The notes under the pieces are model-generated. The model saw only the letters and a program-made list of their open reading frames with translations. It did no database searches and was not told where the DNA came from. Below are positions 9,503 through 37,983 of a stretch of DNA of 39,572 nucleotides, one piece after another (the first letter of the stretch is position 1; each line of letters starts with the position of its first letter). The stretch comes from Octopus bimaculoides (Eukaryota): the NCBI RefSeq assembly GCF_001194135.2, contig NC_069006.1, positions 13,076,053-13,115,624 on the forward strand. The letters are read 5' to 3'. A program made the translations under genes and the position numbers.

Positions 9503-9737
9503 TCATCATCATCATCATCATCGTTTAACGTCCGCCTTCCATGCTAGCATGGGTTGGACGATTTGACTGAGGACTGGTGAAACCGGATGGCAACACCAGG
9601 CTCCAATCTAATTTGGCAGAGTTTCTACAGCTGGATGCCCTTCCTAACGCCAACCACTCAGAGAGTGTAGTGGGTGCTTTTACGTGTCACCCACACGAAA
9701 ACGGCCACGCTCGAAATGGTGTCTTTTATGTGCCACC
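9503..9737 (-). mobile_element. RTE-type 3' end
   Basis: Same consensus as 8228-8541. Confidence 0.75.
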
Positions 9738-10259
9738 NNNNNNNNNNNNNNNNNNNNNNNNNNNNNNNNNNNNNNNNNNNNNNNNNNNNNNNNNNNNNNN
9801 NNNNNNNNNNNNNNNNNNNNNNNNNNNNNNNNNNNNNNNNNNNNNNNNNNNNNNNNNNNNNNNNNNNNNNNNNNNNNNNNNNNNNNNNNNNNNNNNNNNN
9901 NNNNNNNNNNNNNNNNNNNNNNNNNNNNNNNNNNNNNNNNNNNNNNNNNNNNNNNNNNNNNNNNNNNNNNNNNNNNNNNNNNNNNNNNNNNNNNNNNNNN
10001 NNNNNNNNNNNNNNNNNNNNNNNNNNNNNNNNNNNNNNNNNNNNNNNNNNNNNNNNNNNNNNNNNNNNNNNNNNNNNNNNNNNNNNNNNNNNNNNNNNNN
10101 NNNNNNNNNNNNNNNNNNNNNNNNNNNNNNNNNNNNNNNNNNNNNNNNNNNNNNNNNNNNNNNNNNNNNNTCTATTTATCTGTCTTATCTATCAATTTAT
10201 TTATCTGTCTATCGATCTATCTATCTATCTATCTATCCATTTACATATATATATATTTA

Positions 10260-10665
10260 GGTGCAGGAGTGTCTGTGTGCTAAGTAGCTTGCTTCCCAAC
10301 CACATGGTTCCGGGTTCAGTCCCATTGCATGGCACCTTGGGCGAGTGTCTTCTACTATAGCCTCAGGCTGACCAAAGCCTTGTGAGTGGATTTAGTAGAC
10401 AGAAACTGAAAAAGGCCTGTCATATATATGTACATGTATGTATGTGTGTGTATATGTTTGTGTGTCTGTATTTGTCCCCCCAACATCGCTTGACAACCGA
10501 CGCTGGTGTGTTTACGTCTCAGTAACCTAGTGGTTTGGCAAAAGAGACCGATAGAATAAGTACTAGGCTTACAAAGAATAAGTCCTGGGGTCGATTTGCT
10601 CAACTAAAGGTGGTTCTCCAGCATGGTGGCAGTCAAATGACTGAAACAAGTAAAAGAATAAAAGA
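10260..10665 (+). mobile_element. SINE family A, full-length copy
   Basis: Head GGAGTGTCTGTGTG..AAGTAGCTTGCTTCCCAACCACATGGTTCCGGGTTCAGTCCC and body ending AGTCAAATGACTGAAACAAGTAAAAGAATAAAAG. Confidence 0.8.
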
Positions 10666-10671
10666 ATATAT

Positions 10672-10823
10672 GACAGGCTTCTTTCAGTTTCCGTCTAGCA
10701 AATCCACTCTTAAGACTTTGGTTGGCACAAGACTATAGTAGAAGACACTTGCCCAAGGTGCCATGCAGTGGGACCGAACCCGGAACCATGTGGTTGTTAA
10801 GTAAGCTACTTACCACACAGCCA
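10672..10823 (-). mobile_element. SINE family A head, inverted relative to 10260-10425
   Basis: GACAGGCTTCTTTCAGTTTCCGTCT...CTACTTACCACACAGCCAC. Confidence 0.8.
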
Positions 10824-11029
10824 CACACACATATGCGTGTGAGTCTTTGTGTCTGTGTTTGTCCATTACCACTGCTTGACAATTGGTGTTGGTTTGTTTT
10901 TGTTCCCATAACTTAGCAAATAGGAACTGACAGAATAAGGACCAGGCTTTAAATAATAAGATAAGCACTGGGGTCGGCTCGTTCAACGGTACCCCAGCAT
11001 GGCCACAATTTAATGACTGAAACAAGTAA

Positions 11030-11260
11030 AGTGTGAAAGATGTGTGTGTGTGTGTCTGCATGTGTGCATGCATACATATGTATATGCATATCTGTTTGTG
11101 TATATATGTGTGTATATGTGTCTATGTAAGTACATGTGTGCGTGTGTGTATGTATGTATGTGTGTGTGTGTGTATAGGTATGCATATATGCATACATACA
11201 TGTACACAAGAATATATGCATGTACACAGAGCATAGTAGTAGTAGTATCATCATCATCAT

Positions 11261-11293
<33 letters not shown>

Positions 11294-11300
11294 TAGTAGT
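11030..11300. repeat. (TG/TA)n and (AGT/CAT/CAG)n microsatellite cluster
   Basis: Direct reading. Confidence 0.9.
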
Positions 11301-11619
11301 GGTAAGTACCATATGCTGCAATAGTCAGCATGACTAACACTAAATCTTTTGAAAGTTTGAAAATAAAAAAGCAACTAAGAAACAAACAAAAACTCAAAAA
11401 AGGGACATTTTTTTTTTTAACAGAAATATTTTATAATTTTAAATGAGTGGAAGACCCATTATAATAAAATTAATCTTGAGATGAAACACATTGAAAAGAG
11501 GGGTTTATTTAAGGGTTTAGAAAAATATGTTTAGTGGCTGCGTGGAAGAGATAATGTCTGAAGAAGAGGAGAGATTGTTGTGATTACAGATGAAAGAGGA
11601 TACTTTGGGAAATGAAGAA

Positions 11620-11860
11620 GAAAATGGATATGGAGGGATAGCCGGGTAATGTAGGCAAGAGGGATAGCCGAGGAAATTTAGACAGGCAAAAAGGGATACC
11701 CAAAGAAGGGAATTTAGATATACAAAAAGGGATATCGAGACAGATGAGGAAAGAATTTTAGATAGAAAAAGAGGATACCCGGTTGGACGAGAAAGAGAAT
11801 TTGAATACACAAAGAGGGATGGCCGAGAAAGGAAATTCAGATGTACAAAGAGGGATGTTC
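11620..11860. repeat. Degenerate purine-rich tandem repeat (about 30-45-bp units, core AATTTAGA..CAAAGAGGGATAGCC)
   Basis: About 6 recurrences of A(A/G)AGGGAT preceded by AATTT(A/G)GA-like words. Confidence 0.5.
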
Positions 11861-12309
11861 ATGGAGGTGGATTGGAGAATTGAATATCAGCCAGACTGGA
11901 GGAGAGGGTCTGTAGGGTAAAAGGTCACAGAATTTGATTAGTCTGACAAGGCGGAAGGTGTGAATTTGGCGACAGAATTGCATGGTGTAGATGTGGGAGT
12001 GGAATGTTTTGGCAGTTAAACACACCAACTGCTTTTATGTCAGTCACAGACTCTGGATCTGTGTTGCAGGGGGGGGGGGGTGGAAGGGACTAGCAGACTG
12101 ATGTATGGTAATTATTGCCTGTTAGAAGAGAGAAGAAAAATATTATTCCCTGTCTGGTGCTAATGAACTTTGTCACCACACACTGAAATGCAAAGAATTT
12201 AATGGAACCTCCTCTAAACCAGTGCTGTACCACATGTTCCAGAAGGTCGCCCAGGAAATTCACAAGTAAAATCTTCATGCAACAACAAATTAACCCTAGC
12301 CCTTTAAAG

Positions 12310-12372
12310 CAGTGGGTCTCAGCCCTTTTTTTACTTATAGACCCCTTTGATTCCTATGTTACTTGGATGGAC
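12310..12372. mobile_element. hAT-type MITE terminus, truncated by gap
   Basis: CAGTGGGTCTCAGCCC preceded by CTTTAAAG (nnnTAnnn). Confidence 0.45.
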
Positions 12373-12624
12373 NNNNNNNNNNNNNNNNNNNNNNNNNNNN
12401 NNNNNNNNNNNNNNNNNNNNNNNNNNNNNNNNNCACACATTTTTTTCTTTTTAAATATTTTACACATTGCCGAAGACTGAACTATTTCCCCTTTTATTTT
12501 TTTTTGGTTATTTCAGGCATTTGACTGTGGCCATGCTGGAGCACTGCCTTTAGTTCAACAAATCAACCCTAGGACTTTTTTTTTTAGGCCTAGTATTTAT
12601 TCTATCAGTCTTTTGAAAAAATAA

Positions 12625-12834
12625 TAAGGTACTCAGAGATTTGGGTGGTTGTACATTTACAGATTTTTATTAATATATCACATGTTTTTATAAATCATAT
12701 ACTAGCACTTTCATCTACTCTAATAGATTCTTAGATTAGAGTAGATGAAAGTGCTAGTATATGATCTATAAAAACATGTGGTATATTAATAAAAATCTGT
12801 AAATGTACAACCACCCAGATCTCTGAGTACCTTA
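12625..12834. repeat. Long inverted repeat: 100-bp arms, 10-nt spacer, 97/100 identity
   Basis: 12625-12724 is the reverse complement of 12735-12834 with 3 transition mismatches; spacer AGATTCTTAG. Confidence 0.9.
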
Positions 12835-13359
12835 CATTTTCTAATATATATACATATATATATGTATGTATGCATGTGTGTACATGTATGTATGTATGTG
12901 TGTGTGTATATATATATATATNNNNNNNNNNCACTTGCCCAAGGTGCCACACAGTGGGACTGAACCTGGAACCATGTGTTTGGGAAGCAAGCTTCTAACC
13001 ACATAACCATATGTATGCATGTATGTATGTATGTATGTATGTATGTATGTATATATGCATGCATGTATTATGTGTGCATGGTGTGTGTGTGTGTGTAATA
13101 ATTAAATTATGTATCATGCACTTTATTATGTATTGTTATGTGTGTGATCCCCTGGGCCATGGAAGAATTACTTTGCCTGAAACCAGCCCATGGAGTGAAA
13201 AGGAAAAGAAAGTGGGGATCGCATCTCAGTGTCTCAAGAAGAAAGGGCTCAGACACGTGCGTCCAAGATGCATCATTGTATCTTAAAGCATGATGGAAGG
13301 GTCATGAATTGAACAGCTTTAATCATAGTTCTGGACAGTCCAGGTTGACCTGGGGCTAA

Positions 13360-13950
13360 ACAACAACAACAAATAACAACAACATCAACAAATAACAACA
13401 ACATCAACAAATAACAACAACATCAACAAATAACAACAGCAACACCTCTCCTCTATCAACATCACTGATTGTTGTAATGAATGTTCAGATGAAGCAGCAG
13501 TCATAGGAAAAAGATAATCGGCTGCATCAAGAGCAGCAGCAGTGGTTGCAACACCAGCAGTTGCAATACTAGGGACTGCAACATCAACGAGTGCAGCATC
13601 GTCAGTAATATAACAACAACAACAACACTGAAGACAGGTGCAACAGCAGCAGCAATAATATGACAACAGCTGCAACAACTGTGGCAACAGAACAGCAGTG
13701 AAAACAACAATGACAATAACAGCAGCAGCAGCAGTAACAACGGCAACAACAACAACAACAACACTGACAGGTAGACAACATTAATTGCTGTGACATCATC
13801 ATCATCATCAGAAGCAGCAGCACTATCATCATCATCACTGTCATAATCACCTTCGCCATCATCATCATCATCATCATTATCGCCATGACCACCACTATCA
13901 CCCTCACCATCATCATCATCATCATCATCGTTAATAACAACAGCAACTGT
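13360..13950. repeat. Compound trinucleotide satellite (AAC/CAG/CAT) including a 19-bp unit AACATCAACAAATAACAAC x3-4
   Basis: Direct reading; source of several spurious low-complexity ORFs. Confidence 0.9.
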
Positions 13951-14995
13951 GAGAGTGAAGCTAAGGTAATCCTCGTGTTAAGATGACGGAAATCTAAGAA
14001 GCAACCAGCTGATAGATTGTTTTTAAAATAATGTTTAAATATTTTTAATACGAAAACAATATCTTTTTTTTTTTTAATCTTTCGGTCCTGCCCACTTAGT
14101 CGGGCCGCAACTTTTTTCGGACACCCGCCAAAAAATGCTGTCATCAACATTTAAAACGATAAATATTTTACTAATTCTTCGGAACATACGTCTTTACATT
14201 TTTAAAATTCTGCAGTTAATCAGAGGCTTGTTATTTTTATCACCTGGTCGTGTTGCTATGTCATCGAGGTCAACCGTGCCTTGCCTTTTTTTAAAATCTT
14301 TTTTTATGGTTGCTAAAACAAAATACCAGTCAAGTACTGGAGTCGATCTAATCGANNNNNNNNNNNNNNNNNNNNNNNNNNNNNNNNNNNNNNNNNNNNN
14401 NNNNNNNNNNNNNNNNNNNNNNNNNNNNNNNNNNNNNNNNNNNNNNNNNNNNNNNNNNNNNNNNNNNNNNNNNNNNNNNNNNNNNNNNNNNNNNNNNNNN
14501 NNNNNNNNNNNNNNNNNNNNNNNNNNNNNNNNNNNNNNNNNNNNNNNNNNNNNNNNNNNNNNNNNNNNNNNNNNNNNNNNNNNNNNNNNNNNNNNNNNNN
14601 NNNNNNNNNNNNNNNNNNNNNNNNNNNNNNNNNNNNNNNNNNNNNNNNNNNNNNNNNNNNNNNNNNNNNNNNNNNNNNNNNNNNNNNNNNNNNNNNNNNN
14701 NNNNNNNNNNNNNNNNNNNNNNNNNNNNNNNNNNNNNNNNNNNNNNNNNNNNNNNNNNNNNNNNNNNNNNNNNNNNNNNNNNNNNNNNNNNNNNNNNNNN
14801 NNNNNNNNNAAAGACTGGATGAGATATATGGGATCGTAAGAAACAACGAATAAGGGGATGTTTTCTTGATGTGAAAAACTGGTCGTGGTTAATCGAAACA
14901 GCCGCGGACTAGGAAGTGAAAATCTCATTGTTTCTTTGTCTCTCTCTCTCTCTCTCTTTTTTTTTTTTTTAACTTCTATCTTTTAAAGGTTTCCC

Positions 14996-15946
14996 ATGAG
15001 AAACTTGAAACTGAGAGCCAGCAGTAGCAGGATCAACATCGTCCATATCTTGTACAGCAGTGACGGCAACAACAACAACAAGCGTAGCAGCAGCAACGAC
15101 AGTGACAGTAGCAACAGCAGCAGTAGTGACAGTAGCAGCAGCAGCAGTAGTACTAGTATTGGTAGCCGTAGTAGCAGTAGTCGCGATCTTGGCAGCAAGA
15201 TAATGACAACATCAACAGCAATGTCGGAGAACCTGCTGCAAAACCAATACGAAGCAGTTTTCGTTTTGGCAAACGAAGGTTTGGAAGGTTTCTACACATA
15301 TTTAGAAACGAACAATATTCCTTTATTCCTGAGCGACGAGGAAGAGAAATATTTCCAAGATCAGGGTAGTATCTCGGCGAGTGAACGACTACAGTTCATC
15401 TTAAAAACCAGTCGAATTCATCAATGGACAGGTCAGTCTGGACTTAAGATTCAAGCTCAGTGTGGTGTCGTTGATGATGACGAGGATGATGGTGATGGTG
15501 ATGGTGATGTTAGGGTGTCTGAACTTATAGACGATGGAAATAGAGTTGGATATAGTAGCGATGGACAGGTTCAGGACAAGAAGACTGAAGACAAAGACGT
15601 TGGCGACGACAGCGATGCGGTGGTAACCCAATCTAATTCAAGCAGCGATGACAAGCAAGAAGATACGACAGATAGCCGTTTCAATCCGTATGCATTTGTG
15701 CCAGGTTCCAGTCCACATCGGATACCCCCAACGTTGCCCAAGATTGAAGTTTGTGTGTTGTTTCAGCCACCTCTATTTGACTCTATGCCCCATATTCACG
15801 ATGTCATCTTAGATACCATTCGCCAAGCCAGATTCTCTATCAAAATCGCCATGTACCTTTTCACTGACATCTTCATATATAACGCCCTGTGTGAGGCAGC
15901 ATCGAATGCCCTGGTCACAGTCGATATACTCCTGGATGCCACACAG
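14996..15946 (+). CDS. FAM83/DUF1669-like PLD-superfamily gene, coding exon 1 (start codon uncertain: ATG 14996, 15203 or 15221)
   Basis: QYEAVFVLANEGLEGFYTYLETNNIPLFLSDEEE resembles the FAM83 N-terminal helix block (xRLALEALxxxGxxAFxxxLxxExxxxFLSxxE). VLFQPP...IRQARFSIKIAMYLFTDIFIYNALCEAA...VDILLD matches the first half of the DUF1669/PLD fold. The exon ends at a strong donor CAG|GTATGT (15946|15947) in phase 0 and is preceded by a polypyrimidine tract with TAAAG| acceptor at 14988. Confidence 0.9.
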
Positions 15947-16005
15947 GTATGTACTGCTCACACCATGTATGAAATATGAGGGAGAAAGAACATGATCAGG
16001 TTGCG

Positions 16006-16057
<52 letters not shown>

Positions 16058-17600
16058 ATACACATACCACAGCCCGTTCATACTTCACTGTGCTTTCATG
16101 CCTGGTGCTCAACCCGAGACAGGAAGCATCAACTAAATTGTCTAATTACCTAACTACAGTGCCTGTGTGTAATTGTATGTGTAATTATATGTGTGTGTGT
16201 ATGGAATCAGGCATCCTACACAGGCATGTATCGAGCGCTTACATGTTTTTGAACGTAAAAAATTGTCAAGTCTTTATATATGTTTGTGCATGTGTGTGTG
16301 TGTGTTATATCCTTACATACACGCACATATACATAAGTAGATGTGTGTTACTTAAACACTTTTGTCTGAAAGTATGTGTTTATATAAAACATACACATAA
16401 ATGTACACATGCAGTATATGTACATACACATATATAATGTATGTATACACACGTACTTGCAGACAAACACACATAATATAACTGCGCATGGCCATCCCGT
16501 ACAACCCTAACGTTTTCATCAATTCTTGCTTATATTATTATTCAAAAAATAAAAAATAAAGAAAATCCATTAAATTCTCTAATGTTTAATTTTGGAGATT
16601 CCTTACAAGAATAAATCGGGGTTAAATTTCGTTTCAGCTTAGCATGTGTTCCTCATGTTGGACATGCTTCATTCATTCAATACTTATTATGAATGAAATG
16701 TCGATATATAGGAAATGAGAAAGAATATTTTACTACAAACCATATTTAGGATTAAGATTAACATTTACACGGTTAATATATTAAAATAAATCTTTCGGCC
16801 ATATAATTGTAATAAATTATTGTTTTCGAAACAAGAATATGTGCTAATTACTATGTCACACTTTGTGTAATCAATACCAACAGATTTATAAACACGATCT
16901 GAGAGAGATGTAATGTTTTATTTATGTAAACATCTCTGGTAGTTTTTTAAAGTCTTGCTTCAAATTGTGGCGTGTTTAATTTTACTAATAAAATTTAGGT
17001 TAGATTAAATTTAACAAAAATCCATAGAAAAAGAACACGAAACGAAACGAGTTACATCTTGTCTTTCACTGCAACTACTATCGCTAACACTATGGCCAGC
17101 TTTATTAGCTTAGGAAATTTCACTTTCATTTATGTTTGTCTCCTTCAATCTCTCTCTCTCTTTTAATGAAATTATTTTTTATATCTTGGTTAAAGGCAAA
17201 TATTTCATATTTCTAGATGGTTTTCAAGGAAAAATTAACAATTCACTCGCTTTTTTATCATTTCGTCTGTGGTACAAGGTTGGGTCGTATAATTATGCGC
17301 GCGCGTGGTTGTATATATATATATATATATATGCATATATACGTACAGGTATGTGCATACCTACGTCTACCTGTATATATAGGTGCATATCTGGGTACAG
17401 GACATTGCAAACAAAACGTAGACAAAAAAAATAATAATAACCAGAGTACAGAACACACACAGGCCACATAAAGAACATTTTCCTTCATCAGCTACCCCCA
17501 TTCTAACACAGGCGTATATGTGTGTATGTATCTATGTATATGTATGAATATGATATACATACAAACATGTATACATCACCAAACCTGTACGTACGTACAG

Positions 17601-17633
<33 letters not shown>

Positions 17634-17659
17634 ATACACACGTACGCACGCATATATCA

Positions 17660-18775
17660 TCGTTTTCATCATCCTTGTTTAACGTCGTTTTTCCATGCTG
17701 GCATTGGTTGGATGCCATGACAAGAACTAACCAACCAGAGGATTGTGCCAAGTGCCAATATCTTCTTCAGCATGGTTTCCATACGTGGATGCCCTTCTTA
17801 ATGTCAACCTCTTCACAGAGTGTATTGGGTACTTTTTACGTGGCACCAGCAGTCACTGAGTAACTCACAAGACAGGGCCATGCAATTGAAGTGGGGAGTA
17901 GGTTGTTGGGAAATACAGGATCAGATATCTTACAGGAGACGCGATACAATTGTTTTATTGATATATTATCAGAAAAGTATTGCTATGAGTGTTGATCCTC
18001 ACAGAGGCAACTGGCACCCGTGCCACTGACATATGAAAAGCACCTGTTGAGCGATGGGTCACATCAAGGTAATGTGGCTGATGCCTGTGTTGCATAACTG
18101 GCACCCATGACAGTGGCAAGTAAAATGCATCTTTCGAGCGTTGGGCTTCCTGGAGGCAATGACAAATGACTGAGACCTTTAGCAATATGCTGTGCTTGAG
18201 AAGAAGACCCATCAAGCCAAGTGAAATCGTAGTAGTGACAGGTACTGGTGTCATGCAACTGGCACCCTGCAGGTGACACGTCAAAGCACCCATTACACTC
18301 TTAGAGTTGTTGGTGTTAAGAAGGGCATCCAGCTGTAGAAACCATGCCAAATCAGACTGAAGTCTGTTGTGCCCCTCAGCTTACCAGCCCTGGTCAAACC
18401 GTCCAACCCATGTCAGCATGGACAATGGACATAAATGATGATGATAAATATATAACAGTAGATTGCATTGGTATTATTTTACTTATACCACAAAAATATT
18501 GACTCATCAGGTTTATGTATAAAATCCATTTGCTGGATGAACTTTTATTTGCAAGAATAAAATATATACCTTCATTCAATATGCTCTTACCACTTCATTT
18601 GCATATCAATGCTAAAACAAATGCATAATAAACATCATCATTTAAGGTGTGTTTTCCATGCTGGCATGGATTTGATGGTCTGACAGATGCTGGCAAGACC
18701 AGGAACTGTACAAGTTCCATTGTTTGTTTTGGCATGGTTTCTACTGCTGGATACCCTTCTTAATGCCAACCACTT
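17660..18775. mobile_element. Three intronic RTE-type 3' ends in alternating orientation (about 17660-17850 -, 17990-18445 +, 18623-18775 -)
   Basis: Each carries the CCATGCT(A/G)GCATGG and TGGATGCCC.TCTTAA / TAAGAAGGGCATCCAGCTG consensus. Confidence 0.7.
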
Positions 18776-20141
18776 TATTCTATTTTAAAGTTTTGTATCC
18801 ATATAGAAATTTTATGTGGACCCCAAGAGTCCTATGGATTCTGGTCGAGAGCTACTCATCTAAATTCATCACTGAAGCTGTTGTTGACTCTTATTCTACT
18901 TCCTGCAGCTTTGACCAGTATGGCCAGTATAACCAGTATGGCCCTCACTACCCATTTGTTGATACAAAGTTTCGTTAGTGACCAACAGATTACTGAACAT
19001 TTTGCCCTGTCAAATGCCAGGCACAAATACCATCCACTTTTCCACACTTGCATGGGTCAGGCAAAATTTATTGCAACAAATTTTTTTCTATAGCTGGATG
19101 CTCTCTCTGTTGCCAACACTCACCTGTTCCCAAATGAGTTGATATTTCTCCCAAGTCCTTTTAACAGCACACTGGCCGGAAAGTTTCTTTTTACAAGAAA
19201 ACTGTAAACAAATGACACTACTTGTATGATGGTGATGTTTGATGACAGTTGAGATGTGATGTCAAGACAGGAAGGCATAAAAATACACACACACACACGT
19301 ATATATGTGTGCCCACACAAATATACACACATGTGTGTATATATATTTGGTAGTATAAACAAATACATCTCAAAATGATATATCATCATCATCATAGTCA
19401 AGATCCCTTAACTGATGCAGCCAGTTGTTGGGATGCCACTCTAGACATTTTCACAGTCACTAAGGTCTTGTACAATCTGAGTCTTGAAATTGTTTTTCCA
19501 TTGTTGTTAGACTTCGTCATGGCAACAGAGGCTTAGCTGAGTCTTGTTATTATCTCCCTTTGAGGTCTGCTGTCCTTCTATATTAATAAACCCAAAATTA
19601 TGTCTGTCTATCCAGGACTCCTGTATCTCAGTCTATATTTGCTCTACATAGACATATTATACCTTTTTTGGAATCAGGATGATTTCAGGATTGAAAATCT
19701 GCCCTTCATTTGGTTCTTGAACATCCAACATTGGGATCTGATTTAAAACCATTTAGGTTGCTATTTCTAGCAAGTAAAGCTTGGCTGATTCACGCCATCT
19801 TGGTTGGCATTTGTCAGGTGATGTCAGAGATCAAGGAGGAATAAAATGACATTCGCTTCGTTAATTTTACATTGAGATAAGAATTTTAGGACAAATTGGC
19901 CAGCAAATGGAATTCAACTTGGGATTGGAACAACAGAATGATTGCATTACAGAATTAATTCTCATCTGTCCTTAACCTCTGATCAAACACCACCAGGGCA
20001 TATGATCATTATAGGCGGATGATAGTCATGCTATTTAGCTCTCTTTGGTTTTGGGTTGTGGGCTCAATTAGCTCACCACAGGAGCCAACTTAAAAGTCCA
20101 CACAGAGAATGACTTTTAAGCTAGTAGTATATAAATTTTGT

Positions 20142-20265
20142 TTTTTAATCAGCCAAAGTTACAAAGTGACTCGAGGGTTGAGAGTTTCATGCACAGGACT
20201 TATCAGCCTGCCATACACAAAACTTTTGGCCCTTGAGTCTCTTTGTAAGTTCGGCTGATTAAAAA
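20142..20265 (+). other. 46-bp stem hairpin (38 WC, 5 G-U, 3 mismatches on the + strand)
   Basis: 20142-20187 pairs with 20220-20265; the inner segment can form CAGG/CCTG around a 9-nt loop. Confidence 0.75.
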
Positions 20266-20304
20266 TAAGGACTATTTTGTCATCTTTGACCGATGGCTTA
20301 CATG

Positions 20305-20885
20305 GTCATCATCATCATCATCATCATCGTTTAATGTCCGCCTTCCATGCTAGCATGGGTTGGACGATTTGACTGAGGACTGGTGGACCAGGAGGTGACA
20401 CTAGGCTCCAATCTGATTTGGCAGAGTTTCTACAGCTGGATGCCCTTCCTAATGCCAACCACTCCGCGATGTAGTGGGTGTTTTACGTGCCACCGGCATG
20501 AGGGCCAGTCAGGCGGAACTAGCGACGGCCACGCTTGAAATGGTGTGTTTTACGTGCCACCAGCACANNNNNNNNNNNNNNNNNNNNNNNNNNNNNNNNN
20601 NNNNNNNNNNNNNNNNNNNNNNNNNNNNNNNNNNNNNNNNNNNNNNNNNNNNNNNNNNNNNNNNNNNNNNNNNNNNNNNNNNNNNACGTGCCACTGGCAC
20701 AAGTGCTAGGAAGGCGACGTTGGTAACAATCACGCTGGTGCTATTTACGTGTCACACTGGTACAGGTGCCATCTCGATTTCGCTTGCCCCAACAGGTCTT
20801 CGCAAGCCGAGTCTAGTGTTCCTATAAATTTGGTTCGATTCCGATTTCACTTGCCTCACCATGTCTTTGCAAGCGGAGTTTAGTG
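20305..20885 (-). mobile_element. RTE-type 3' end spanning a gap
   Basis: CATCATCGTTTAATGTCCGCC...ACGTGCCA repeats...GATTTCGCTTGCCCCAACAGGTCTTCGCAAGC; same family as 22380-22830. Confidence 0.75.
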
Positions 20886-21548
20886 TCCAATGAAGGAATG
20901 TTACGCGTAAGTGGGCTGGCTACATCCCTGGCAGAGGCCTTGGATTTTTGGTCTCACTCTCTCGTCTGTGGCCATCTTCAGTTCAATGGCAAGACCAGGT
21001 CAAGACAACTGGGGATGGAGACAAATGCAGTGGGTGACCAAGGCATGTCTTACTTGCTTCATCTTGTTCCCTGCATTCCCCAATACATTACTGCAGTTTC
21101 TTTCCTTTCTGTTGAACCATGAAGGTTTTATTTTTCTTTTTTGTAGAGTTCACCGGGTCTGGTCTTCATACGCATAGATAGGTAAGCCCTAATATGCTAA
21201 TTAAGCTATAGCCAAGCCCCTGGCAGATGCTATGACTCTGGGGCAGAGTAGATCAGGGAACAATAGGGGCTAAGGGGTGGTTCACCATTTCTCAAAACGT
21301 TTTGACTCATGACCCAGGTCCCTACTACCAAATGCAAAGAAAATATATTTATACATACATACAATGGAAGGAAAATATATTTATACACACATACATACAC
21401 ACACATAAAGAAGAACAGGGTTTAAATTTTAAACCCCATTTGGGTTCTTCATTTTTATATCTATGCCACACCTGGAACCAACCCCTGATTCAGATCTGTG
21501 GTTTATATTGGATTTGGTACCTATGGATGTATGTGTGTGTATATATAT

Positions 21549-21590
<42 letters not shown>

Positions 21591-21838
21591 TTTTATTCTT
21601 TTCTTTGTTTTATGCTGGTGTGTTTACATCCCTGTCACTTAGCAGTTCAGCAAGAGAGGCTGATAGAATAAGTATTAGGCTTACAAAGAATAAGTCCTGG
21701 GGTCGATTTGCTCGACTAAAGGCAGTCCAGCATGGCCACAGTCAAATGGCTGAAACAAATAAAAAATAAAAGAAAATATATNNNNNNNNNNNNNNNNNNN
21801 NNNNNNNNNNNNNNNNNNNNNNNNNNNNNNNATATATG

Positions 21839-22062
21839 CAGCAATCCCTTGACTATCATGGGTGTTATATTCAAAACCCCACACAATTCGTGAAAATTCA
21901 TGAAGTAGAAACAGTACTGTACTGTATATATTTTTTTTAATTATTTTTACAATTTGCATATATTCATTTTATTATAAATGGAAGACAACATCACAGAGGA
22001 ATCGACATAAGTTTGAATAATAAACCGCGATAGGTGAACCACGATATGGCGAGGGATTACTG
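21839..22062. mobile_element. pogo/Tigger-type MITE (about 224 bp)
   Basis: TIRs CAGCAATCCCTTGACTATCATGG / CCACGATATGGCGAGGGATTACTG, followed by TA. Confidence 0.65.
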
Positions 22063-22379
22063 TATATATTATATATGAATACCTGCATGTGACACCTAAT
22101 GGCTGCTTTCACCTCACTGTCAAATTAATGTTACAGTACCTAGCCAATCCTAGTAGCCTAGATTCTAATTATCCTGTAAATAATCAATATATGTTTACAC
22201 ACACACACACACATTGGGCTTCTTTCAGTTTTCACCAACCAAACCCACTTCATCCAAAGTTTTACTTGGTCTGAGTTTGCTCAAAGTACTATGCAGTAGG
22301 ACTCAACTTGTAATCATGCAATTGTGCAGCAGACTTCTTAACCAAACACACTTGTGCGCCTAAGCAGACGACCATCTCT

Positions 22380-22830
22380 CATCGTCATCATCATCATCAT
22401 CATTTAACGTCCGCTTTCCATGCTAGCATGGGTTGGACGATTTGAATGAGGTCTGGTGAACCAGATGGCTATACCAGGCTCCAATCTGATTTGGCAGAGT
22501 TTCTGCAGCTGGATGCCTTTCCTAATGCCAACCACTCCGAGAGTGTAGTGGGTGCTTATATGTGCCACCGGCACGAAGGCCAGTCAGGCAGTACTGGCAA
22601 CGGCCATGCTCAAAATGGTGTATTTTACATGCCACCTGCACAGGAGCCAGTCCAGCAGCACTGGCAACGATCTTGCTTGAATGTCTTTTCACATGCTACC
22701 GGCACAAGTGCCAGGAAGGCGACACTGGGCACAGGTGCCATCACGATTTCGCTTTCGCTTGCCCCAACAGGTCTTCGCAAGCCAAGGTTAGTGTCCAATG
22801 AAGGAGACGACGTTGGCATGGGTGCCATTC
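22380..22830 (-). mobile_element. RTE-type 3' end, ungapped copy
   Basis: Full family consensus from the (CAT)n tail through the GCCACC tandem units. Confidence 0.8.
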
Positions 22831-23449
22831 AAAATTTTGGATGAGGCGGTTTTCACTCTTGTTTCTGATTGAGTCTTTTGAACAGAAACCATAGGTACCT
22901 CCCGTAAGTTATCAAGGGAAAAAGACATTCAGTAGTAGAGAGGGATATGGATGTTGTACAGGTAAAATAAGGGTTAGATTCAGGCAGAGCCATGTGGTAA
23001 GATGTTTGCTCGTCAAGTACTTGGTTCTGGGTTCAGTTCTGCATGGCATCTTGGGCAAGTATCTTCTGCTATTAGCCCGGGGCAGATCAAAGCTTTGTGA
23101 ATAGGTCTATCTACATGTGGGTATGTATGTGTGTGTGTATTTGTGCCTCTTTGTCTTTACATCATATGATAGTTGTAAATGAGCATCACTGTTATACAAG
23201 CAGTGTCATTCATTTCCAATACTCTGCAAGAACAAGTCTGATCATAGGGAAATATTACATTGCTTGCAAAGAGGTGACAGTTGGTGACTGGAAGAGCATC
23301 TCGCCATAGAAAATCTACCTCAATAAACTCCTTCTGACTTGCACAAACATGGCAAGAGTGGACATTAAAACAATAACGATGATGATGAATATAATTTTTC
23401 TTACCATTTTTAAAATCTTCTTTTTCTCAATATCAATTTCCATTATATA

Positions 23450-23748
23450 TGTAAAACCCAAACATATACACAGTCATGTTACCCCAAACACACACATTCA
23501 TGTTAAACCAAACACACACAGTCATGTTACCCCAAACACACACACAGTCATGTTACCCCAAACACACACCAGTCATGTTACCCCAAACACATGCAGTCAT
23601 GTTACCCCAAACATACACCAGTCATGTTACCCCAAACACACACATTCATGTTACCCCAAACACATATACAGTCATGTTACCCCAAACACACATACAGTCA
23701 TGTTACCCCAAACATACACGCAATCATGTTACCCCAAACATATACACA
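23450..23748. repeat. Minisatellite, about 11-12 units of 24-26 bp (CAGTCATGTTACCCCAAACACACA)
   Basis: Direct reading; explains the SHVTPNTH-repeat ORFs. Confidence 0.9.
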
Positions 23749-23794
23749 ATCTGCATTGAATAGTCCTAGCTCTGATACTATAAATGGATATGAG

Positions 23795-24220
23795 ATTGGG
23801 CTGTTGCAGAAAAGAATCGCAAGACAGATTCTTTAAGCTAAGCTAAGTGGCAGAAGACTCTAGGAGTAGACTAAGAATGAAATGGTTGCATATTATCCAT
23901 AATCTCAGTGAGTCTCTCCTGGTCAAGTTGCTACTTTTCTGCATTGGGAAGTCATGGTTCTGGTACTACAGACAAGTGGTTAGGCTGTCACAGGAAAGAA
24001 TTGTAAGACAGATTCTTTAAGGTGTGCCAACCAGCAAAAGACCTAGGGGTAGACCAAGAATGAGACATTTGGATGACATAACTATAGTTTCAGCTGGTTG
24101 TGTTTGGGAATCCATTTGGAAAGTTTAAAGATGGTTGCTTCTAATTAGACCCTATGGTGGGGGTGGTTGAGGATTGAGGACTTTGCTAACAACATCTCTC
24201 CTCAGAATTGTGAGTGGAGA
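23795..24220 (+). mobile_element. Two tandem decayed RTE ORF2 C-terminal segments
   Basis: 23798-23900 and 23981-24080 share AAAGAAT.G.AAGACAGATTCTTTAAG...TAGG.GTAGAC.AAGAATGA; the second reads RPRGRPRMRHLDDI. Confidence 0.5.
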
Positions 24221-24321
24221 AGGTGGATGGATAATTGCATGCAGACATACATACACATGGAACAACTAAAGTAGTTTATACATCCTTTTCAACTGGAAGT
24301 GATTTATACATGCACACACAA

Positions 24322-24363
<42 letters not shown>

Positions 24364-25030
24364 ATTAATACAAGCAACGCATAATAGTGAAAAAGAACAC
24401 AATACAGAGATACAGAATTAAAAATACTTTTCTTTGATTTTAAAGTTGAAAACCACTTTGAAGTCACTATCAACTTTAAAAATGAATAAGTGTGTGTGTG
24501 TGTTTACATGTATATACACACACACATACATACATGCATACACACGTGGCTGTATGGTAAAAAGCTTGCTTCCCAACCACATGGTTCTGGGTAAAAAATA
24601 AGTCCTGGAGTTGATTTCTTTGACTAAAACCTGTCAAGGCAGTGCTCCAGCATGGCCACAGTCAAATGACTGAAACAAGTAAAAGAATATATCCATACAT
24701 ATATGTCCTTGGGGTTTTTGAAGTTGAAAGTGTTGCTGCTGCAGATTTGACAACTCAGCAGTGGCGAGACTTCTAAGTCACTGTCAGATTTTAGAAAATG
24801 GGAAAAAATAAAGTATATATGTGTATGTAGTCTTTTTCCATTTAGCTGTAAAGCTATATAAGTGACTCAAGCCCTGAGAGTTTTGTACAGAGTTCTGAAC
24901 CAACAAATTTAAATTGTAAATTTTCTTTGTGTGTGTGTGCGTGCATGCATGCATACGCCTGTGTGTGTGTGTAAAATTAGAAATATTGCCTTTCTAAATC
25001 TCTCAGAGAGACTTATACAGTAGCAGCATG

Positions 25031-25305
25031 ATAAAGTGATGGTTTGTTGTCAACTTAATGTGACATCGACAACTGGCAAGCCAACCTACTCCAGACTGAT
25101 GAAGAGCAATAACTCTGAAACTAGTCTCTTGATGGTGGCTTTGCTGGATGGAGCTGCTTATCTCCCCTGTTTGAAAACTTAAGGACACAGAACACTTGTG
25201 TCACACAGCCAACTGGAAACGATATTTCCTGGGACTAAATAGCAGTAGCATTCTTCCCCTTTCCTGGGACTGCCACATTAAGTTGACTACAATCCATCAC
25301 TTCAT
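25031..25305. mobile_element. 275-bp element bounded by 35-bp inverted repeats (31/35 identical); MITE-like
   Basis: ATAAAGTGATGGTTTGTTGTCAACTTAATGTGACA (25031-25065) versus the reverse complement of 25271-25305. Confidence 0.6.
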
Positions 25306-25649
25306 ATATATATATATATATANNNNNNNNNNNNNNNNNNNNNNNNNNNNNNNNNNNNNNNNNNNNNNNNNNNNNNNNNNNNNNNNNNNNNNNNNNNNNN
25401 NNNNNNNNNNNNNNNNNNNNNNNNNNNNNNNNNNNNNNNNNNNNNNNNNNNNNNNNNNNNNNNNNNNNNNNNNNNNNNNNNNNNNNNNNNNNNNNNNNNN
25501 NNNNNNNNNNNNNNNNNNNNNNNNNNNNNNNNNNNNNNNNNNNNNNNNNNNNNNNNNNNNNNNNNNNNNNNNNNNNNNNNNNNNNNNNNNNNNNNNNNNN
25601 NNNNNNNNNNNNNNNNNNNNNNNNNNNNNNNNNNNNNNNNNNNNNNNNA

Positions 25650-25970
25650 ATAATCCGAAGGAGCTAGATCCAGACAATATGCTGTGTGTGGCATCGGTTC
25701 AATTCCCTCAAGTTCCTGGAGTATATTCTTGGTCATTCAAGTGGTATGAGGTCTTGTATTGTCTTGCTGCAGAAGAGTTCATTTTCTGGTAACCAATGCT
25801 GGGCATTGTTACCGCACAGTGGCATACATCCACTCCAGCTGTTCAGATTACAAGTTGATATTGATGGTTTGACCATCCAGAATGAACTCCTCTTAATTCC
25901 ACCAGATACAGGGCATCTCCTTGTGTTTGAAACTTCCATGTTTGGAGACAAGTTCCAGAAGCTGGCCCTT
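25650..25970 (-). pseudogene. Mariner transposase remnant (DD34D region)
   Basis: Reads TKNILQELEGIEPMPHTAYCLDLAPSDY (the YSPDLAPSDY motif); frameshifted. Confidence 0.8.
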
Positions 25971-25989
25971 GCTTAACCACTGCTTATGC

Positions 25990-26275
25990 ACGTTAGGGTT
26001 GCAGAAAAAATATCTCCCTCAGATTATAACTTGTTCTGATTCCTGGCTCACTTCCTGTCTGAAGACACTTCACCAACTGAGAAGAGATGGATGTTTCAGT
26101 GAAGGAGTTCTTCCCCTCAAACGACAAGAACTCCTATCAGCATGGGATTAAAGAACTAGCAGATGGTGCAACACAATGGCCTCTACTTTGAATGCTTGAC
26201 TGCTTTTGTTGGAACTCAATGAATAAAACAAATAAGTTATCAAAATGTTGCAAAACTCTTTGACTCAACACAATG
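25990..26275 (+). pseudogene. Mariner transposase C-terminus and 3' TIR remnant
   Basis: SPSDYNLF*FLAHFL...EEMDVSVKEFFPSNDKNSYQHGIKELAD...HNGLYFE; TIR-like GCAAAACTCTTTGACTCAACACAAT. Confidence 0.7.
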
Positions 26276-26301
26276 TATATATGTATATATACACACATAT
26301 G

Positions 26302-26690
26302 TGGAGGCGCAATGGCCCAGTGGTTAGGGCAGCGGACTCGCGGTCATAGGATCGCGGTTTCGATTCCCAGACCAGGCGTTGTGAATGTTTATTGAGCGAA
26401 AACACCTAAAAGTTCCACGAGGCTCTGGCAGGGGGTGGTGGCTAACCCTGCTGTACTCTTTCACCACAACTTTCTCTCACTTTTACTTCCTGTTTCTGTT
26501 GTGCCTGTAATTCAAAGGGTCAGCCTTGTCACACTGTGTCACGCTGAATATCCCCGAGAACTACATTAAGGGCACATGTGTCTGTGGAGTGCTCAGCCAC
26601 GTTAATTTCACGAGCAGGCTGTTCCATTGATCGAATCAACTGGAACCCTCGACGTCATAAGCGACGGAGTGCCAACAACACACATATAGG
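26302..26690 (+). mobile_element. tRNA-derived SINE family B, near full length
   Basis: A box TGGCCCAGTGG, B box GGTTTCGATTCC, no tRNA 3' acceptor stem; ends in CAACAACA. Confidence 0.85.
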
Positions 26691-26854
26691 TGTGTGTGTG
26701 TACCTAGTTTGTTCTGGGTTTGTCTCTGAAATTCCAATGGAGAGTCATGTGTTAAACTGCCATTTAAGAAATGACAAAGAATAAATAAAATAAAACCAGT
26801 CTATTTTATATTGTTTTATTATTTTGTTTTCTCTTGTTCTATAAATGTTCCATA

Positions 26855-27560
26855 AATGTTTTGGGTTCAAATCGCACCAACATCAACTTTACCTTTCATT
26901 CTTCCAAGGTCAGTAAAATAAAATAACTGTTAATTACTGGCATCGATCTAATCAACTAACCCCAGATTTGTGCTTATATCAGAAACAATAAGGCAGTGGA
27001 CTGGCAAAATCAGTGGAGCGTTGGAAAAAATACCTTCTGGTATTTGTTCCAAGCTGTTACATTGTGATCAAATTTGCCTTTCATCCATCCAAGGTTGATA
27101 AAATAAAGTACCAGTCAAGTATTGGGGTTGATGGTATTGAGTAAACCCCATTCCCTCAAAATTGCTGACTTTATTCCTAAAGTAGAAAAAAATATCATTG
27201 TCTATCTTTATGACCTGAGTTCAAATTCTGCCAGGGTTGACTTTGCCTTACATTCTTTTAAGGTTTGATAAAATGAGCACTATTTGGGTACTGGCCCCAC
27301 AAAACTACTGGCCATGTTCCAAAATTTGAAGCCATTATTATTATTATCATTATTATTGTGGCAAACTGGCTGAATTGTTAGCACCTGGGCAAAATGCTTA
27401 GTAATATCTTTACTTTCTGAGTTCAAATTCCACCAAGGTCGACTTTGCCTTTCATCCTTTAGGGGGTCAATGAAATAAGTTCCAGTTACGTACTGGGGTT
27501 GATATAATTGAGTAGTCCCCTCCCCCAAAGTTTTAGGCCTTGTGCCTTTAGTAGAAAGGA
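26855..27560 (+). mobile_element. Cluster of about 4 degenerate SINE family C copies
   Basis: Recurrent GAGTTCAAATTC.GCC.AGGT.GACTTTGCCTTTCATCC...GTACCAGT..AGTACTGGGGTTGAT; family also at 30875-31230 and 32890-33000. Confidence 0.7.
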
Positions 27561-27910
27561 TTATAATTATTATTATTATTATTATTATCATCTCAGACCA
27601 ACAATATCACAAATAAACATACATTGTTAATTAATTAATACTATAATTATTATTTCTATTCTTATTAATCATTTATTCTTTTTTCTTTCTTTCATTGTTT
27701 CCTACCTGCCTGTCCAACCATGACTACCACTGCTGCTGACTTCATTACCAACAATGCTACCCTGCACCCTGTCACTGTTGTCATTATATCTACGTTTGCC
27801 GGCATTTTCATCTCCCTTCTTCGTCTTCTTCACCTTCTCCTCCTCCTTCTCCTTCTCCTCATCATCACCATCATCGTCGTCGTCGTCGTCATCATCGACA
27901 TTGTCATCAG

Positions 27911-28216
27911 GTGGACAAATTTTTGGAGATGCTGGGTAAGAACGGTCTGATCATACCAGAAAAGGTGAACATCTGTCAGAACAGTGGTACAGGACCGTAC
28001 CAGAGAAAAACCGGAGCAACAATGGGCATTGCGCATGAAAAGTTTCTTATTTGTGATGAAAGCACAGCCATTATCGGATCCTACAACTACACCTGGTCAG
28101 CTGCTCATATCAACCGCGAAAATGTCATCGTCATTCGAGAAGCCAATCACCCCATCATCAAGTCGTTAATTGATGAATTCACCCGATTGCAAGAATCGTG
28201 TATCCTCATTGGTTGA
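27911..28216 (+). CDS. FAM83/DUF1669-like PLD-superfamily gene, coding exon 2 (terminal, carries HKD motif)
   Basis: Acceptor TCATCAG|GTG (27910|27911), phase 0. The join reads LLDATQ|VDKFLEML, like FAM83 'LLDxxxxxxFLxM'. Contains HEKFLICDESTAIIGSYNYTWSAAHINRENVIVI; stop TGA at 28214-28216. Confidence 0.9.
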   Translation: MDKFLEMLGKNGLIIPEKVNICQNSGTGPYQRKTGATMGIAHEKFLICDESTAIIGSYNYTWSAAHINRENVIVIREANHPIIKSLIDEFTRLQESCILIG

Positions 28217-28454
28217 TTATTATTATTATTATTATTATGTTTATGTTTATCATTATTAATTTCATTATTATTATTATTATTATTATTATTACACATTTTT
28301 CATATTTTTTTTTTTAATCTTACATTTAAAAAAAAGTCTTTACATGCATATTTCTTTTAAACAAACGACAAATTATATTAGAGGCTTAAAGTGTAGCCTT
28401 ATTTTTAATCATCATACACATACATACATGCATTCACTCATGTATATATATATG

Positions 28455-28486
<32 letters not shown>

Positions 28487-28599
28487 AGCTCATCAGAAGA
28501 CAAGCTATATTAGAGGCTGCAAGCTAGTCTTTTCTTTTATTACAATGCATACAAACTTACATGTATACATACATTCATACTTATACATATATACACACC

Positions 28600-35799: not shown

Positions 35800-37975
35800 A
35801 AGCAATGCCAAAGTTTTAACTGTGTTATGTTTCAGGTGTGTTCAATGAAGTGTTAAAAGATTTCACTTAAAAACACTGGATGACCAATATTTGTTTTTAG
35901 TGGTAGGCTGCCACACACAAACTCAATGTTAGCAATGATTGTAAATAGTTGCGATATGTAGTTAAATCCTCATCAGCCAATTCATCTTTCAAAGAATCAA
36001 GTTGGGAAATTGATGGAATTGACGTTTTGAAATGTTCATCTTATACAACACCAATTTTGAAATGAAAGCAGTGATGATTTACAATCAACGAGAGTTTTTC
36101 GGCTTCCTTGCAATAACTTGCTCAAATCGTTTAATTTTGTGAATATATCACAAAGAAAAAAGATATCGCATCTTGCAACCATCAATGAAGCGGATAGTGA
36201 AGTATCTTCAAAGAAAGATATGATTATATGAAACAGTTCAACAAAGCGTAAAACACGGTTTTCTTTTGACAGCCACCACACTTCGGTATGGTATGATCCT
36301 CATCATTTCTCAGACAGAGTCGACAGAAAATTTGATCAGACAAGAGACTGGACTTCAATTTGTTCACAGTCTTGATAACTAACTGTAGTGCATCATTCAA
36401 TCTATCGTTCATATTTTTTGTCACTAAATGCTGCCGGTGTGCCAAGTAATGAACAGTTAGTATCTGGTGAGAAATTTCATGCTTTAGGAGAGATGAAAAT
36501 CCTCTGTATCTTCTTATCATCAAAGGGGCTCCATCAGATGCACAGACAAGAATATTACTGAGGGGATATTATGTTCAAAGAGGAAAGACCTGAAAAGGAA
36601 AAATAGTTAGCCTTTTGAATCGTGTGATAATTTCTCTGTGAACAGCATTTCCTCACAAGGTTAAAGGTCTTTATTGAAATACTGAACATATACCATCATC
36701 AAACATTGATTGTCCACAACACTTGACTCATCCATTTGTATAGAAAATTCAGAATGCTGAATATTAATGAGCTGATGTTTGACATCATTGACCATTTCAT
36801 CGGTGCATTGAGAAACCATGTTATTACTAAGTGGGATCTTCATAATGTTATCGGGTTTTTCGTGCATGACAGTTGACAAAACCTCTTCGATAACCAGGCA
36901 AAGTAATGTTTCTCCAATTGTGTGAAACTTCCCAGACTTAGCAACAAGCAATGCAATGTTGTACGATGCAATCAACCCTTCATTCTCCTGTTTACTAGTT
37001 TCCTGGAGTAGCGTGTTGAATGTTTGTGTTTGCTTTTTGAAAGTGGAGCTCAGTTGCAAAAAGTATGATAACGGCTTGTCCTTCTTGTAGGAATGCTTTG
37101 CACCAAAGTGATACTTCAAGCGTGAAGGTTTCATTGCTTCGTTGGTCAATGTTTGATGGCAAAGAAGGCACATTGGTAACTGACAGTTCTGAGGAGAGGG
37201 ATAAATCGAAACGAAAAATAATCACTTCTGTACTGTCAACAAATTCCTCTTGACTGGAAATATCTGTAAAGTGAAAATGTGAGGACGAATTTCTGCGGAC
37301 GGCATCAGAAAGGTAGTATAGTATTCCCAAAGAGAAGAAGAAATCATTAGAGCAGAGTCAGCTGACATGTCTTTACTGAAGCAAATACGGATCTAGTTCG
37401 TTTGGCTGCCAGCATTTCAAAAATTAGAGTTTATTGAAAATTTTAGAATTTGGCACATTAATGTACTTTTCCAAGCTAAATAGCTGGAGTTGTTCAACTT
37501 TTTCCAGAAAAATATTTTAAAAAAGTTATATAGGTTTAGAATCTGATCATTTTCACCCAGTCAAGAAACATGATTTCAAAGATGTCATTTTGTGCGTGAC
37601 TGCACATTTTGTCAACATCCTGAAAATAGCACTTGTGTTTTGATATGAAACCACAGAATTACACACAACATATAACTTCTCATAACTTTTTTTTTTCCAG
37701 AAAATTTTTGCGAATTTGCATTCTATACTCAGGACTTCATATGATTATGCAAAAAAAAAAAAAAAAATATTCGATTGATAAACAAATCCACTTTTTTAAT
37801 ACAAAGGGACGTCTCATGCAAGTAGTCAAATCGATAAAAGTGCATCCTTATTCTAGGCATGCCTAGATATCAGTAAATGCAGACTTGATTTCTAAAAATT
37901 CATTGTCACCCACAAAATGTTCATATCGCCCATCACCCACCAGTAAGTTGGAATCGCCCACTTTGGGAAGATATG
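35800..37975 (-). mobile_element. Decayed hAT transposon (Charlie/Buster group), element E1
   Basis: Minus-strand relics CLLCHQTLTNEAMKPSRLKYHF (BED-like), FSIQMDES, CTDGAPLM, HYLAHRQHL, HTEVWWLS, DIFTKLNDLSKLLQG. 5' TIR CATATCTTCCCAAAGTG ends at 37975; the 3' end was not found. Confidence 0.85.
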
Positions 37976-37983
37976 GGTTAGAG

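Follow-up and report, generated by a model that had tools for sequence, protein, structure and literature searches.

A FAM83/SACK1-family protein of coleoid cephalopods with an intact HKD signature and no CK1-docking pocket is a candidate phosphodiesterase

A 39,572-nucleotide stretch of the Octopus bimaculoides genome (assembly GCF_001194135.2, contig NC_069006.1, positions 13,076,053 to 13,115,624; hereafter, the window) contains a two-exon gene on the + strand, whose product we assign to the FAM83/SACK1 family. FAM83 proteins have been called vertebrate-only and not conserved in invertebrates, and they have been described as pseudo-phospholipases D (pseudo-PLDs) (PMC6008594, PMC6726907); the vertebrate restriction quoted in a preliminary description of this DNA is thus indeed the published view. 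At the level of sequence, we found a reciprocal pattern: the catalytic residues are intact and the CK1 pocket is absent in the octopus protein, while the opposite holds in vertebrate FAM83. We consider it probable that the octopus protein is a catalytically active phosphodiesterase of the SACK1 family. A broader proposal, plausible but tentative, is that coleoids and a group of marine eukaryotes carry an active, ancestor-type FAM83/SACK1 protein, and that this protein would act in soluble form as a homodimeric nuclease or phosphodiesterase of the HKD type.

Catalytic residues are intact in the octopus protein and lost in vertebrate FAM83

The product of the second exon contains GIA-H-E-K-FLIC-D-ESTAII-G-S-Y-N-YTWSAAHI-N-R-E-N. 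It holds the HxK(x)4D motif H-E-K-F-L-I-C-D (28034–28057, +), the G-S-Y-N motif (28076–28087, +) with its Ser at +15 and its Asn at +17 from the His, and the N-R-E motif (28112–28120, +), whose Glu lies at +28 and corresponds to E122 of Nuc. The codons of the His (28034), of the Asn of G-S-Y-N (28085), and of the Glu of N-R-E (28118) stand exactly where the preliminary description had placed them. Alignment with Salmonella Nuc (1byr) was gapless from His to Glu and matched H94/K96/S109/N111/E122 at a spacing of +2/+15/+17/+28, so the claim of a Nuc-like spacing also holds.

The signature comprises eight positions (H, K, D, G, S, N, N, and E), all of them invariant in five cephalopod sequences and in four sequences from the marine eukaryotes, which we refer to as the sister group; the same signature was also intact in most generic PLDc_2 proteins matched by our searches. 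As a vertebrate set, we used 112 FAM83 representatives, named from a spot-checked sample only. The catalytic His, found in 9/9 cephalopod and sister-group sequences, is mostly Gly, Ser, Glu, or Ala in the vertebrate proteins. The Asn of GSxN, again present in all nine, is Ser (GSYS) in 106 of the 112 representatives, while the Glu at +28, likewise conserved in the nine, occurs in none of the 112. These counts bear out the loss of catalytic residues that had been ascribed to vertebrate FAM83. Sequences of the FAM83D type keep H-K-D but not the Asn and the Glu.

The CK1-docking pocket is absent from the octopus protein

Mutation of Y204, I206, D262, or F296 in FAM83G abolishes CK1-alpha binding (bioRxiv 10.1101/2025.06.25.661481). 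We mapped the pocket positions via a caecilian FAM83G that carries the expected residue at every offset. Position Y204 is Tyr in 112/112 vertebrate representatives, Asp in cephalopods, and His, Asn, or Thr in the sister group. R235 is Arg in 108/112 vertebrate proteins, Cys in cephalopods, and Gly or His in the sister group. A similar picture emerged for V175 (Val in 102/112; Ser or Asn in cephalopods; Ser or Asp in the sister group) and for F296 (Phe or Tyr in 109/112; Leu in both cephalopods and the sister group). Hence, the FAM83G set Y204/I206/D262/F296 reads D/L/D/L in octopus, where only the Asp and a conservative Ile-to-Leu exchange are kept. Unlike vertebrate FAM83A-H, the octopus protein has the catalytic His, Asn, and Glu and lacks equivalents of Y204, R235, F296, and V175.

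These residues bear directly on a different reading, in which the protein would serve, as vertebrate FAM83 does, as a scaffold without catalysis and possibly as a CK1 anchor, with the HKD motif kept for structure or binding. Its membership in Pfam SACK1, the three-part architecture that it shares with FAM83G, and the presence of the HKD Asp, required in FAM83G for the binding of CK1, would all fit such a role. There is also a precedent in FAM83D, which retains H-K-D but for which no PLD activity was detected (PMC6008594); the missing Asn and Glu in FAM83D-type sequences agree with that report. However, the residues that bind CK1-alpha are changed (Y204 to Asp, F296 to Leu, R235 to Cys, and V175 to Ser), and the eight signature positions are invariant across coleoids and a sister group that is 33–37% identical, an invariance that would be difficult to account for if catalysis were not under selection. 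On balance, we regard a scaffold as unlikely and prefer to read the protein as an active phosphodiesterase.

The octopus protein has the architecture of a SACK1 domain

In the numbering of a 349-aa protein, residues 1–75 (15203–15427, +) comprise the likely start and the SACK1 N-terminal three-helix block, and residues 76–180 (15428–15742, +) form an acidic disordered linker. The first half of the PLD-like core, with LFQPP, IAMYLFTD, and ILLDATQ, occupies residues 181–248 (15743–15946, +) and ends at the splice donor. Exon 2 encodes the second half, residues 249–349 and the stop codon (27911–28216, +), and is 97% identical to its O. vulgaris counterpart.

Hidden Markov model (HMM) searches with DUF1669/FAM83 and PLDc_2, which the preliminary description had suggested, gave scores above both Pfam cut-offs. 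SACK1 (formerly DUF1669, PF07894) matched with 105.7 bits (cut-off 21.4; E = 4.1e-30) and PLDc_2 with 69.5 bits (cut-off 27; E = 3.2e-19); PLDc reached 18.5 bits. Among sequences of known structure, the best match was FAM83B (E = 1.2e-15), followed by FAM83A (1e-10), Nuc (9e-6), PLD6 (1.2e-5), and NucT (3e-5), with 60.8 bits for FAM83B as compared to 28 for Nuc and PLD6. NCBIfam gave weak NucT matches far under the family cut-offs (39 bits versus 297), with DrmC also among the relatives.

The AlphaFold2 (AF2) model has a mean predicted local distance difference test score (pLDDT) of 56.5, with 70–89 in the core and less than 50 in the linker and in two catalytic loops. It shows N-terminal helices at residues 9–36, 45–53, and 59–69, a disordered stretch at 67–179 (pLDDT <50), and an alpha/beta core. 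Foldseek ranked FAM83B first (E = 5e-14, TM-score 0.80) and then FAM83A (TM 0.73–0.76); the scores further down were 0.74 for Nuc, 0.75 for NucT, and 0.5–0.64 for Zucchini/PLD6, at E values of 1e-7 to 1e-9 for PLD6, Nuc, and NucT. A profile built from the cephalopod N-terminal block alone matched vertebrate FAM83 proteins at residues ~31–65. Thus, both the FAM83-like placement and the FAM83-type N-terminal helix block of the preliminary description stood up to the analysis.

FAM83G consists of helices (29–73), a disordered loop (74–128), and the core (128–315) (bioRxiv 10.1101/2025.06.25.661481). The acidic linker of the octopus protein, with an isoelectric point (pI) of 4.05, is the counterpart of this loop. 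The octopus protein keeps the SACK1 markers QPP and FTD as well as the Trp of FTW. That Trp is present in 112/112 vertebrate representatives and in 4/44 generic PLDc_2 proteins, and the generic PLDc_2 matches lack the three-helix block, QPP, and the Trp. The QPP, TWSAA, and IAMYLFTD motifs listed in the preliminary description were all found in the product. It had singled out IAMYLFTD as unlike FAM83, and indeed the Asp of "MD-FTD", invariant in vertebrates, is Tyr or Phe in the proteins studied here, a feature of generic PLDs.

We found no membrane anchor, since no 19-residue window exceeded a mean Kyte-Doolittle hydropathy of 1.29, a maximum that falls inside the core; the earlier judgment of a protein without an N-terminal anchor that is "not obviously zucchini" agrees with this value. 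A Pfam scan of the protein detected no lipid-binding domain. The octopus protein consists of nothing but a SACK1 domain, in which the acidic disordered linker separates a three-helix bundle from a PLD-fold core, and it is probably soluble. In both profile and fold comparisons, vertebrate FAM83A-H are its best match, with the same three-part layout and with QPP, FTD, FTW, and the HKD Asp in common; unlike them, it has no long C-terminal extension.

We also weighed whether the likeness to FAM83 might be no more than a resemblance, the protein being instead the PLD6/Zucchini orthologue of octopus or a nuclease of the Nuc type. Nuc of Salmonella (1byr) and NucT of Helicobacter (6ehi) are single-HKD proteins with the same catalytic residues and spacing and TM-scores of 0.74–0.75, and PLD6/MitoPLD/Zucchini, an animal enzyme that likewise has a single HKD motif, shares this catalytic set; the matches to PLD6, Nuc, and NucT are significant both by sequence (E ~1e-5 to 3e-5) and by fold. 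FAM83B and FAM83A, however, score better by sequence, FAM83B by ten orders of magnitude, and come first by fold. Identity to Nuc is ~22%, and Nuc is secreted and has neither the N-terminal helix bundle nor the acidic linker nor the SACK1 markers. PLD6 is less similar (E = 1e-5; TM 0.5–0.64) and differs by its N-terminal membrane anchor; from a listing of Cys and His positions, we also saw no zinc-binding wing in the octopus protein. The octopus protein also carries markers of SACK1 (the three-helix block, QPP, and the FTW Trp), and no PLD6-type protein was found among the best 150 of 3318 HMM matches. Thus, a PLD6 or Nuc identity is highly improbable. We rejected a PLD6/Zucchini orthologue on the FAM83 scores, the fold ranking, the SACK1 markers, and the missing anchor; the evidence supports membership of the octopus protein in the FAM83/SACK1 family.

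Cephalopod and sister-group proteins lie outside the vertebrate FAM83 clade

A word-indexed protein search reached the cephalopods and the sister group only; vertebrate FAM83 came into view with an exhaustive HMM search, which covered 1.84 billion representative proteins and returned the 3318 matches. Only cephalopod orthologues scored better than 1e-30. The next best matches, at ~100 bits, were the sister-group proteins P0008, P0009, P0012, P0096, and P0165, which are 250–280 aa long, contain SACK1 and PLDc_2, and are 33–37% identical to the octopus protein. They derive from a 1.8-Mb ENA contig (ERZ25068511), a Tara metagenome scaffold (TARA_SAMEA6035503_METAG), and NCBI GCA_029782575.1, all from eukaryotes. 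Their genes are intronless and, on one contig, tandemly duplicated: the 7-kb contig L002 of GCA_029782575.1 carries P0165 (1685–2440) and P0009 (3326–4114) in tandem, both SACK1-type with intact HKD. Like the cephalopod proteins, the sister group has the N-terminal helix block and the signature GIAHEKFM..D..GSYNFTWSAANINRE and lacks the CK1-pocket residues. Unlike them, it has a short linker, and its core has a pI of 6.8 in P0009 and of 9.3–9.9 in P0008, P0012, and P0096.

The vertebrate FAM83 proteins came after the sister group, followed by generic multi- and single-HKD PLDc_2 proteins. The spot-checked vertebrate names were FAM83B in medaka, fam83ga in the Chinese sucker (Myxocyprinus asiaticus), FAM83G in a caecilian, FAM83F in birds, FAM83C in frog, FAM83A in paddlefish and sturgeons, and FAM83D in skate, along with an unnamed SACK1-domain protein in hagfish. 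The best 150 of the 3318 matches included no named invertebrate protein from outside the cephalopods.

We built a neighbor-joining tree of the core domain from Kimura distances (74 taxa, 200 bootstraps). Vertebrate FAM83 was monophyletic in 98.5% of replicates, with the octopus protein outside this clade in 197/200. A SACK1 clade of cephalopods, sister group, and vertebrates was separated from generic PLDc_2 proteins in 82% of replicates, and cephalopods and the sister group formed a clade in 74.5%. The branching outside the vertebrate clade fits the proposal that the octopus protein represents an ancestral-like state of FAM83. The patchy distribution over coleoids, one eukaryote group, and vertebrates implies many losses or gene transfer.

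The two-exon gene has a conserved splice junction and is under constraint

The gene (exon 1, 14996/15203–15946; exon 2, 27911–28216; + strand) is joined by a phase 0 splice, read directly from the sequence. From the ATG at 14996, the exon 1 open reading frame (ORF) runs for 317 codons up to the donor CAG/GTATGT (15946/15947); a GT..AG intron of 11.96 kb as assembled (15947–27910, +) leads to a polypyrimidine-rich acceptor ...tcatcag/G (27910/27911), after which 101 codons and a stop end at 28216. The spliced 418-aa product contains LFQPP, IAMYLFTD, and, across the junction, ILLDATQ/VDKFLEM. Its sequence matches that of RefSeq XP_014775108.1 ("protein FAM83A [Octopus bimaculoides]") with 100% identity, and UniProt A0A0L8H5Z8 ("PLD phosphodiesterase domain-containing protein") is the same sequence.

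The alignment with human FAM83B spans the exon junction without a gap. In O. vulgaris, with an intron of 5.9 kb, and in Argonauta hians, with one of 6.3 kb, both free of gaps, the same GT..AG junction joins the same residues, so that the 15946/27911 junction of the preliminary description is upheld. In decapodiform genomic contigs, the junction is read through (P0005–P0007; LLDATQ/VR...). Cuttlefish-like transcripts from four SRA runs carry the complete 312-aa spliced ORF on contigs of 975–1105 bp, which is the appearance of spliced mRNA.

The orthologues bear varied names: FAM83G-like in O. sinensis and Argonauta hians, FAM83F or FAM83B isoform X1 in O. vulgaris, and none given in Acanthosepion pharaonis. 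This inconsistency argues that the octopus protein is not orthologous to any single vertebrate FAM83 paralogue. By these orthologues, the FAM83-like gene is conserved across coleoid cephalopods. Relative to O. vulgaris, the ratio of nonsynonymous to synonymous substitution rates (dN/dS) was 0.07 in the N-terminal helices, 0.14 in the PLD-like core, and 0.52 in the acidic linker, whose length differs between species. In the comparison with Argonauta, synonymous sites were saturated over the whole coding sequence, and dN in the core was 0.05. The low dN/dS of the folded parts attests to purifying selection on the gene.

Of the 12 N-gaps in the window, three fall between the exons (20568–20685, 21782–21831, and 25323–25648) and leave the coding sequence untouched. 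These gaps are what could speak for an artefact, in which two unrelated ORFs would be joined across a gapped scaffold, or for a pseudogene. In a blastn comparison with the O. vulgaris chromosome locus (L004), window 14810–19560 was collinear with 9621–15887 of that locus and window 27197–28598 with 15950–17344. The sole break was window 19560–27197 (7.6 kb), which holds all three intronic N-gaps and has no O. vulgaris counterpart. Because the gap stretch is absent in O. vulgaris, the same junction is used in gap-free introns, and the FAM83B alignment is gapless, we conclude that no exon is hidden in the gaps. Collinearity, the conserved junction, the gapless homology across it, the spliced transcripts, and dN/dS well below 1 make an artefact or pseudogene barely credible, and we rejected it. 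The locus is a real, functional, and constrained gene.

The start of the gene had been placed at 14996 in the preliminary description, within a span of 14996–28216; the exons and the junction of that span stand, whereas the start probably does not. In O. vulgaris, the counterpart of 14996–15202 falls into frame 1 and the main ORF into frame 2, and the models of O. sinensis, O. vulgaris, and Argonauta begin at MTTSTAMSEN, which corresponds to the ATG at 15203. On these two grounds, the ATG at 15203 is the likely start codon, giving the 349-aa protein. The upstream extension (14996–15202, +; 69 codons), a Ser/Asn-rich microsatellite included in the 418-aa RefSeq model, is probably 5′ untranslated region (5′UTR). 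A 454-N gap (14356–14809), 187 bp upstream of the ATG at 14996, matches ~387 bp of O. vulgaris sequence (L004 9234–9620); the promoter and 5′UTR of the FAM83-like gene are therefore partly unread in the window.

Proposed activity and origin of the family

Because each chain has one HKD motif, a homodimer with a composite active site is expected. Two copies would dimerize so that their HKD motifs make one active site, as in Nuc and Zucchini; according to the literature, SACK1A and SACK1B crystallize as PLD-like dimers. In HKD enzymes, it is the His that acts as nucleophile (PMC6008594). One His would attack the phosphodiester to form a phospho-histidine intermediate, the other would protonate the leaving group, and water would then resolve the intermediate. 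As the substrate, we slightly favor a nucleic-acid phosphodiester over a phospholipid, since the nearest active relatives are nucleases, an anchor and a lipid-binding domain are missing, and the sister-group cores are basic.

Several points weigh against this proposal, in addition to the report that no PLD activity was detected for FAM83D. The core of the cephalopod proteins is acidic, with a pI of 5.0–5.5 and a net charge of −5 to −8, which is unusual for a non-specific nuclease. In the AF2 model, loops 283–290 and 307–317, which hold the His and the stretch after GSYN, have pLDDT <50, and thus the active-site geometry stays outside what the model shows. Neighbor joining is a simple method, and the nodes at 82% and 74.5% are moderately supported.

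The acidic core could instead point to an active HKD enzyme that works on lipid, as a MitoPLD-like cardiolipin hydrolase or a phospholipid hydrolase. A pI of about 5.3 speaks against non-specific nucleic-acid binding, and the catalytic set is the same as in PLD6/MitoPLD. Yet the protein has neither a membrane anchor nor a hydrophobic segment (maximum 1.29) nor a Pfam lipid-binding domain, the active proteins closest to it in structure and in NCBIfam are the nucleases Nuc, NucT, and DrmC, and the sister-group cores are basic apart from P0009. We judge a lipid enzyme rather improbable and retain the lean toward a nuclease.

Parsimony with a catalytic outgroup suggests an ancestor with an intact HKD site. 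The octopus protein would then represent the catalytic lineage of the FAM83/SACK1 family, and the vertebrate FAM83 paralogues would have arisen by loss of catalysis and gain of the CK1-docking pocket. If this is true, the vertebrate CK1 anchors are pseudoenzymes that lost His, Asn, and Glu and gained a Tyr/Arg/Phe kinase-docking pocket, and the family, whose distribution is patchy, long predates the vertebrates. The two groups would form a before-and-after pair for how an enzyme became a kinase-anchoring pseudoenzyme, and the comparison points to candidate substitutions, among them Asn to Ser, the change of Glu to either Asn or Ser, and, at position 204, Asp to Tyr. The octopus protein may also be a new animal HKD phosphodiesterase.

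Public databases already contain the gene model and the two domain labels as automatic annotation. Our literature search found no paper discussing a cephalopod FAM83, and the recognition of a catalytic-type FAM83 homologue without the CK1 pocket appears to be unpublished. Its value lies in insight into evolution and mechanism rather than in a new kind of system.

Repeats and neighboring sequences

The intronic stretch absent from O. vulgaris (19560–27197) holds, besides its N-gaps, repeat-like ORFs and probably consists of repeat or transposon insertions in the O. bimaculoides intron. One such ORF (22446–22844) is SINE-like (short interspersed element). A short ORF adjoining the gap 25323–25648, which ends in ...YCLDLAPSDY, resembles what we take to be the C terminus of a mariner/Tc1 transposase; it had no Pfam match. 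A repeat that translates to ...LAEFLQLDA(L/F)PNANHSESV... recurs at 3330–3563 (−), 9577–10260 (+), 17955–18350 (−), and 22446–22844 (+), and is probably an abundant octopus SINE. Outside the gene, a broken chain of ORFs on the − strand (36036–38602; for example, 36661–37173 and 38375–38602) resembles a decayed hAT-type transposase. Pfam scans of the transposase-like fragments (36.0–38.6 kb and 25.6 kb) and of the SINE-like ORF gave nothing significant, and the transposase and SINE labels therefore rest on resemblance.

The C terminus of the O. vulgaris isoform CAI9741428.1 (P0001) reads ...QESWPCWGIALEV... in place of the conserved ...QESCILIG, although O. vulgaris DNA still encodes CILIG followed by a stop codon. 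A repeat-like ORF of the window (10949–11374, −) contains the string WPCWG as well, and this O. vulgaris isoform may splice into a repeat.

On the sister-group contig L002, a tRNA gene (5949–6021, −) was the sole Rfam match. At locus L003, ~6.5 kb downstream of the intronless P0008 gene, a 124-aa ORF containing ...ILGDFNADCGTF... (17294–17668, +) resembles an exon of a gene of the DNase I/endonuclease-exonuclease-phosphatase family; Pfam gave no match. A 308-aa product that is 82% identical to this ORF is transcribed in two SRA runs.

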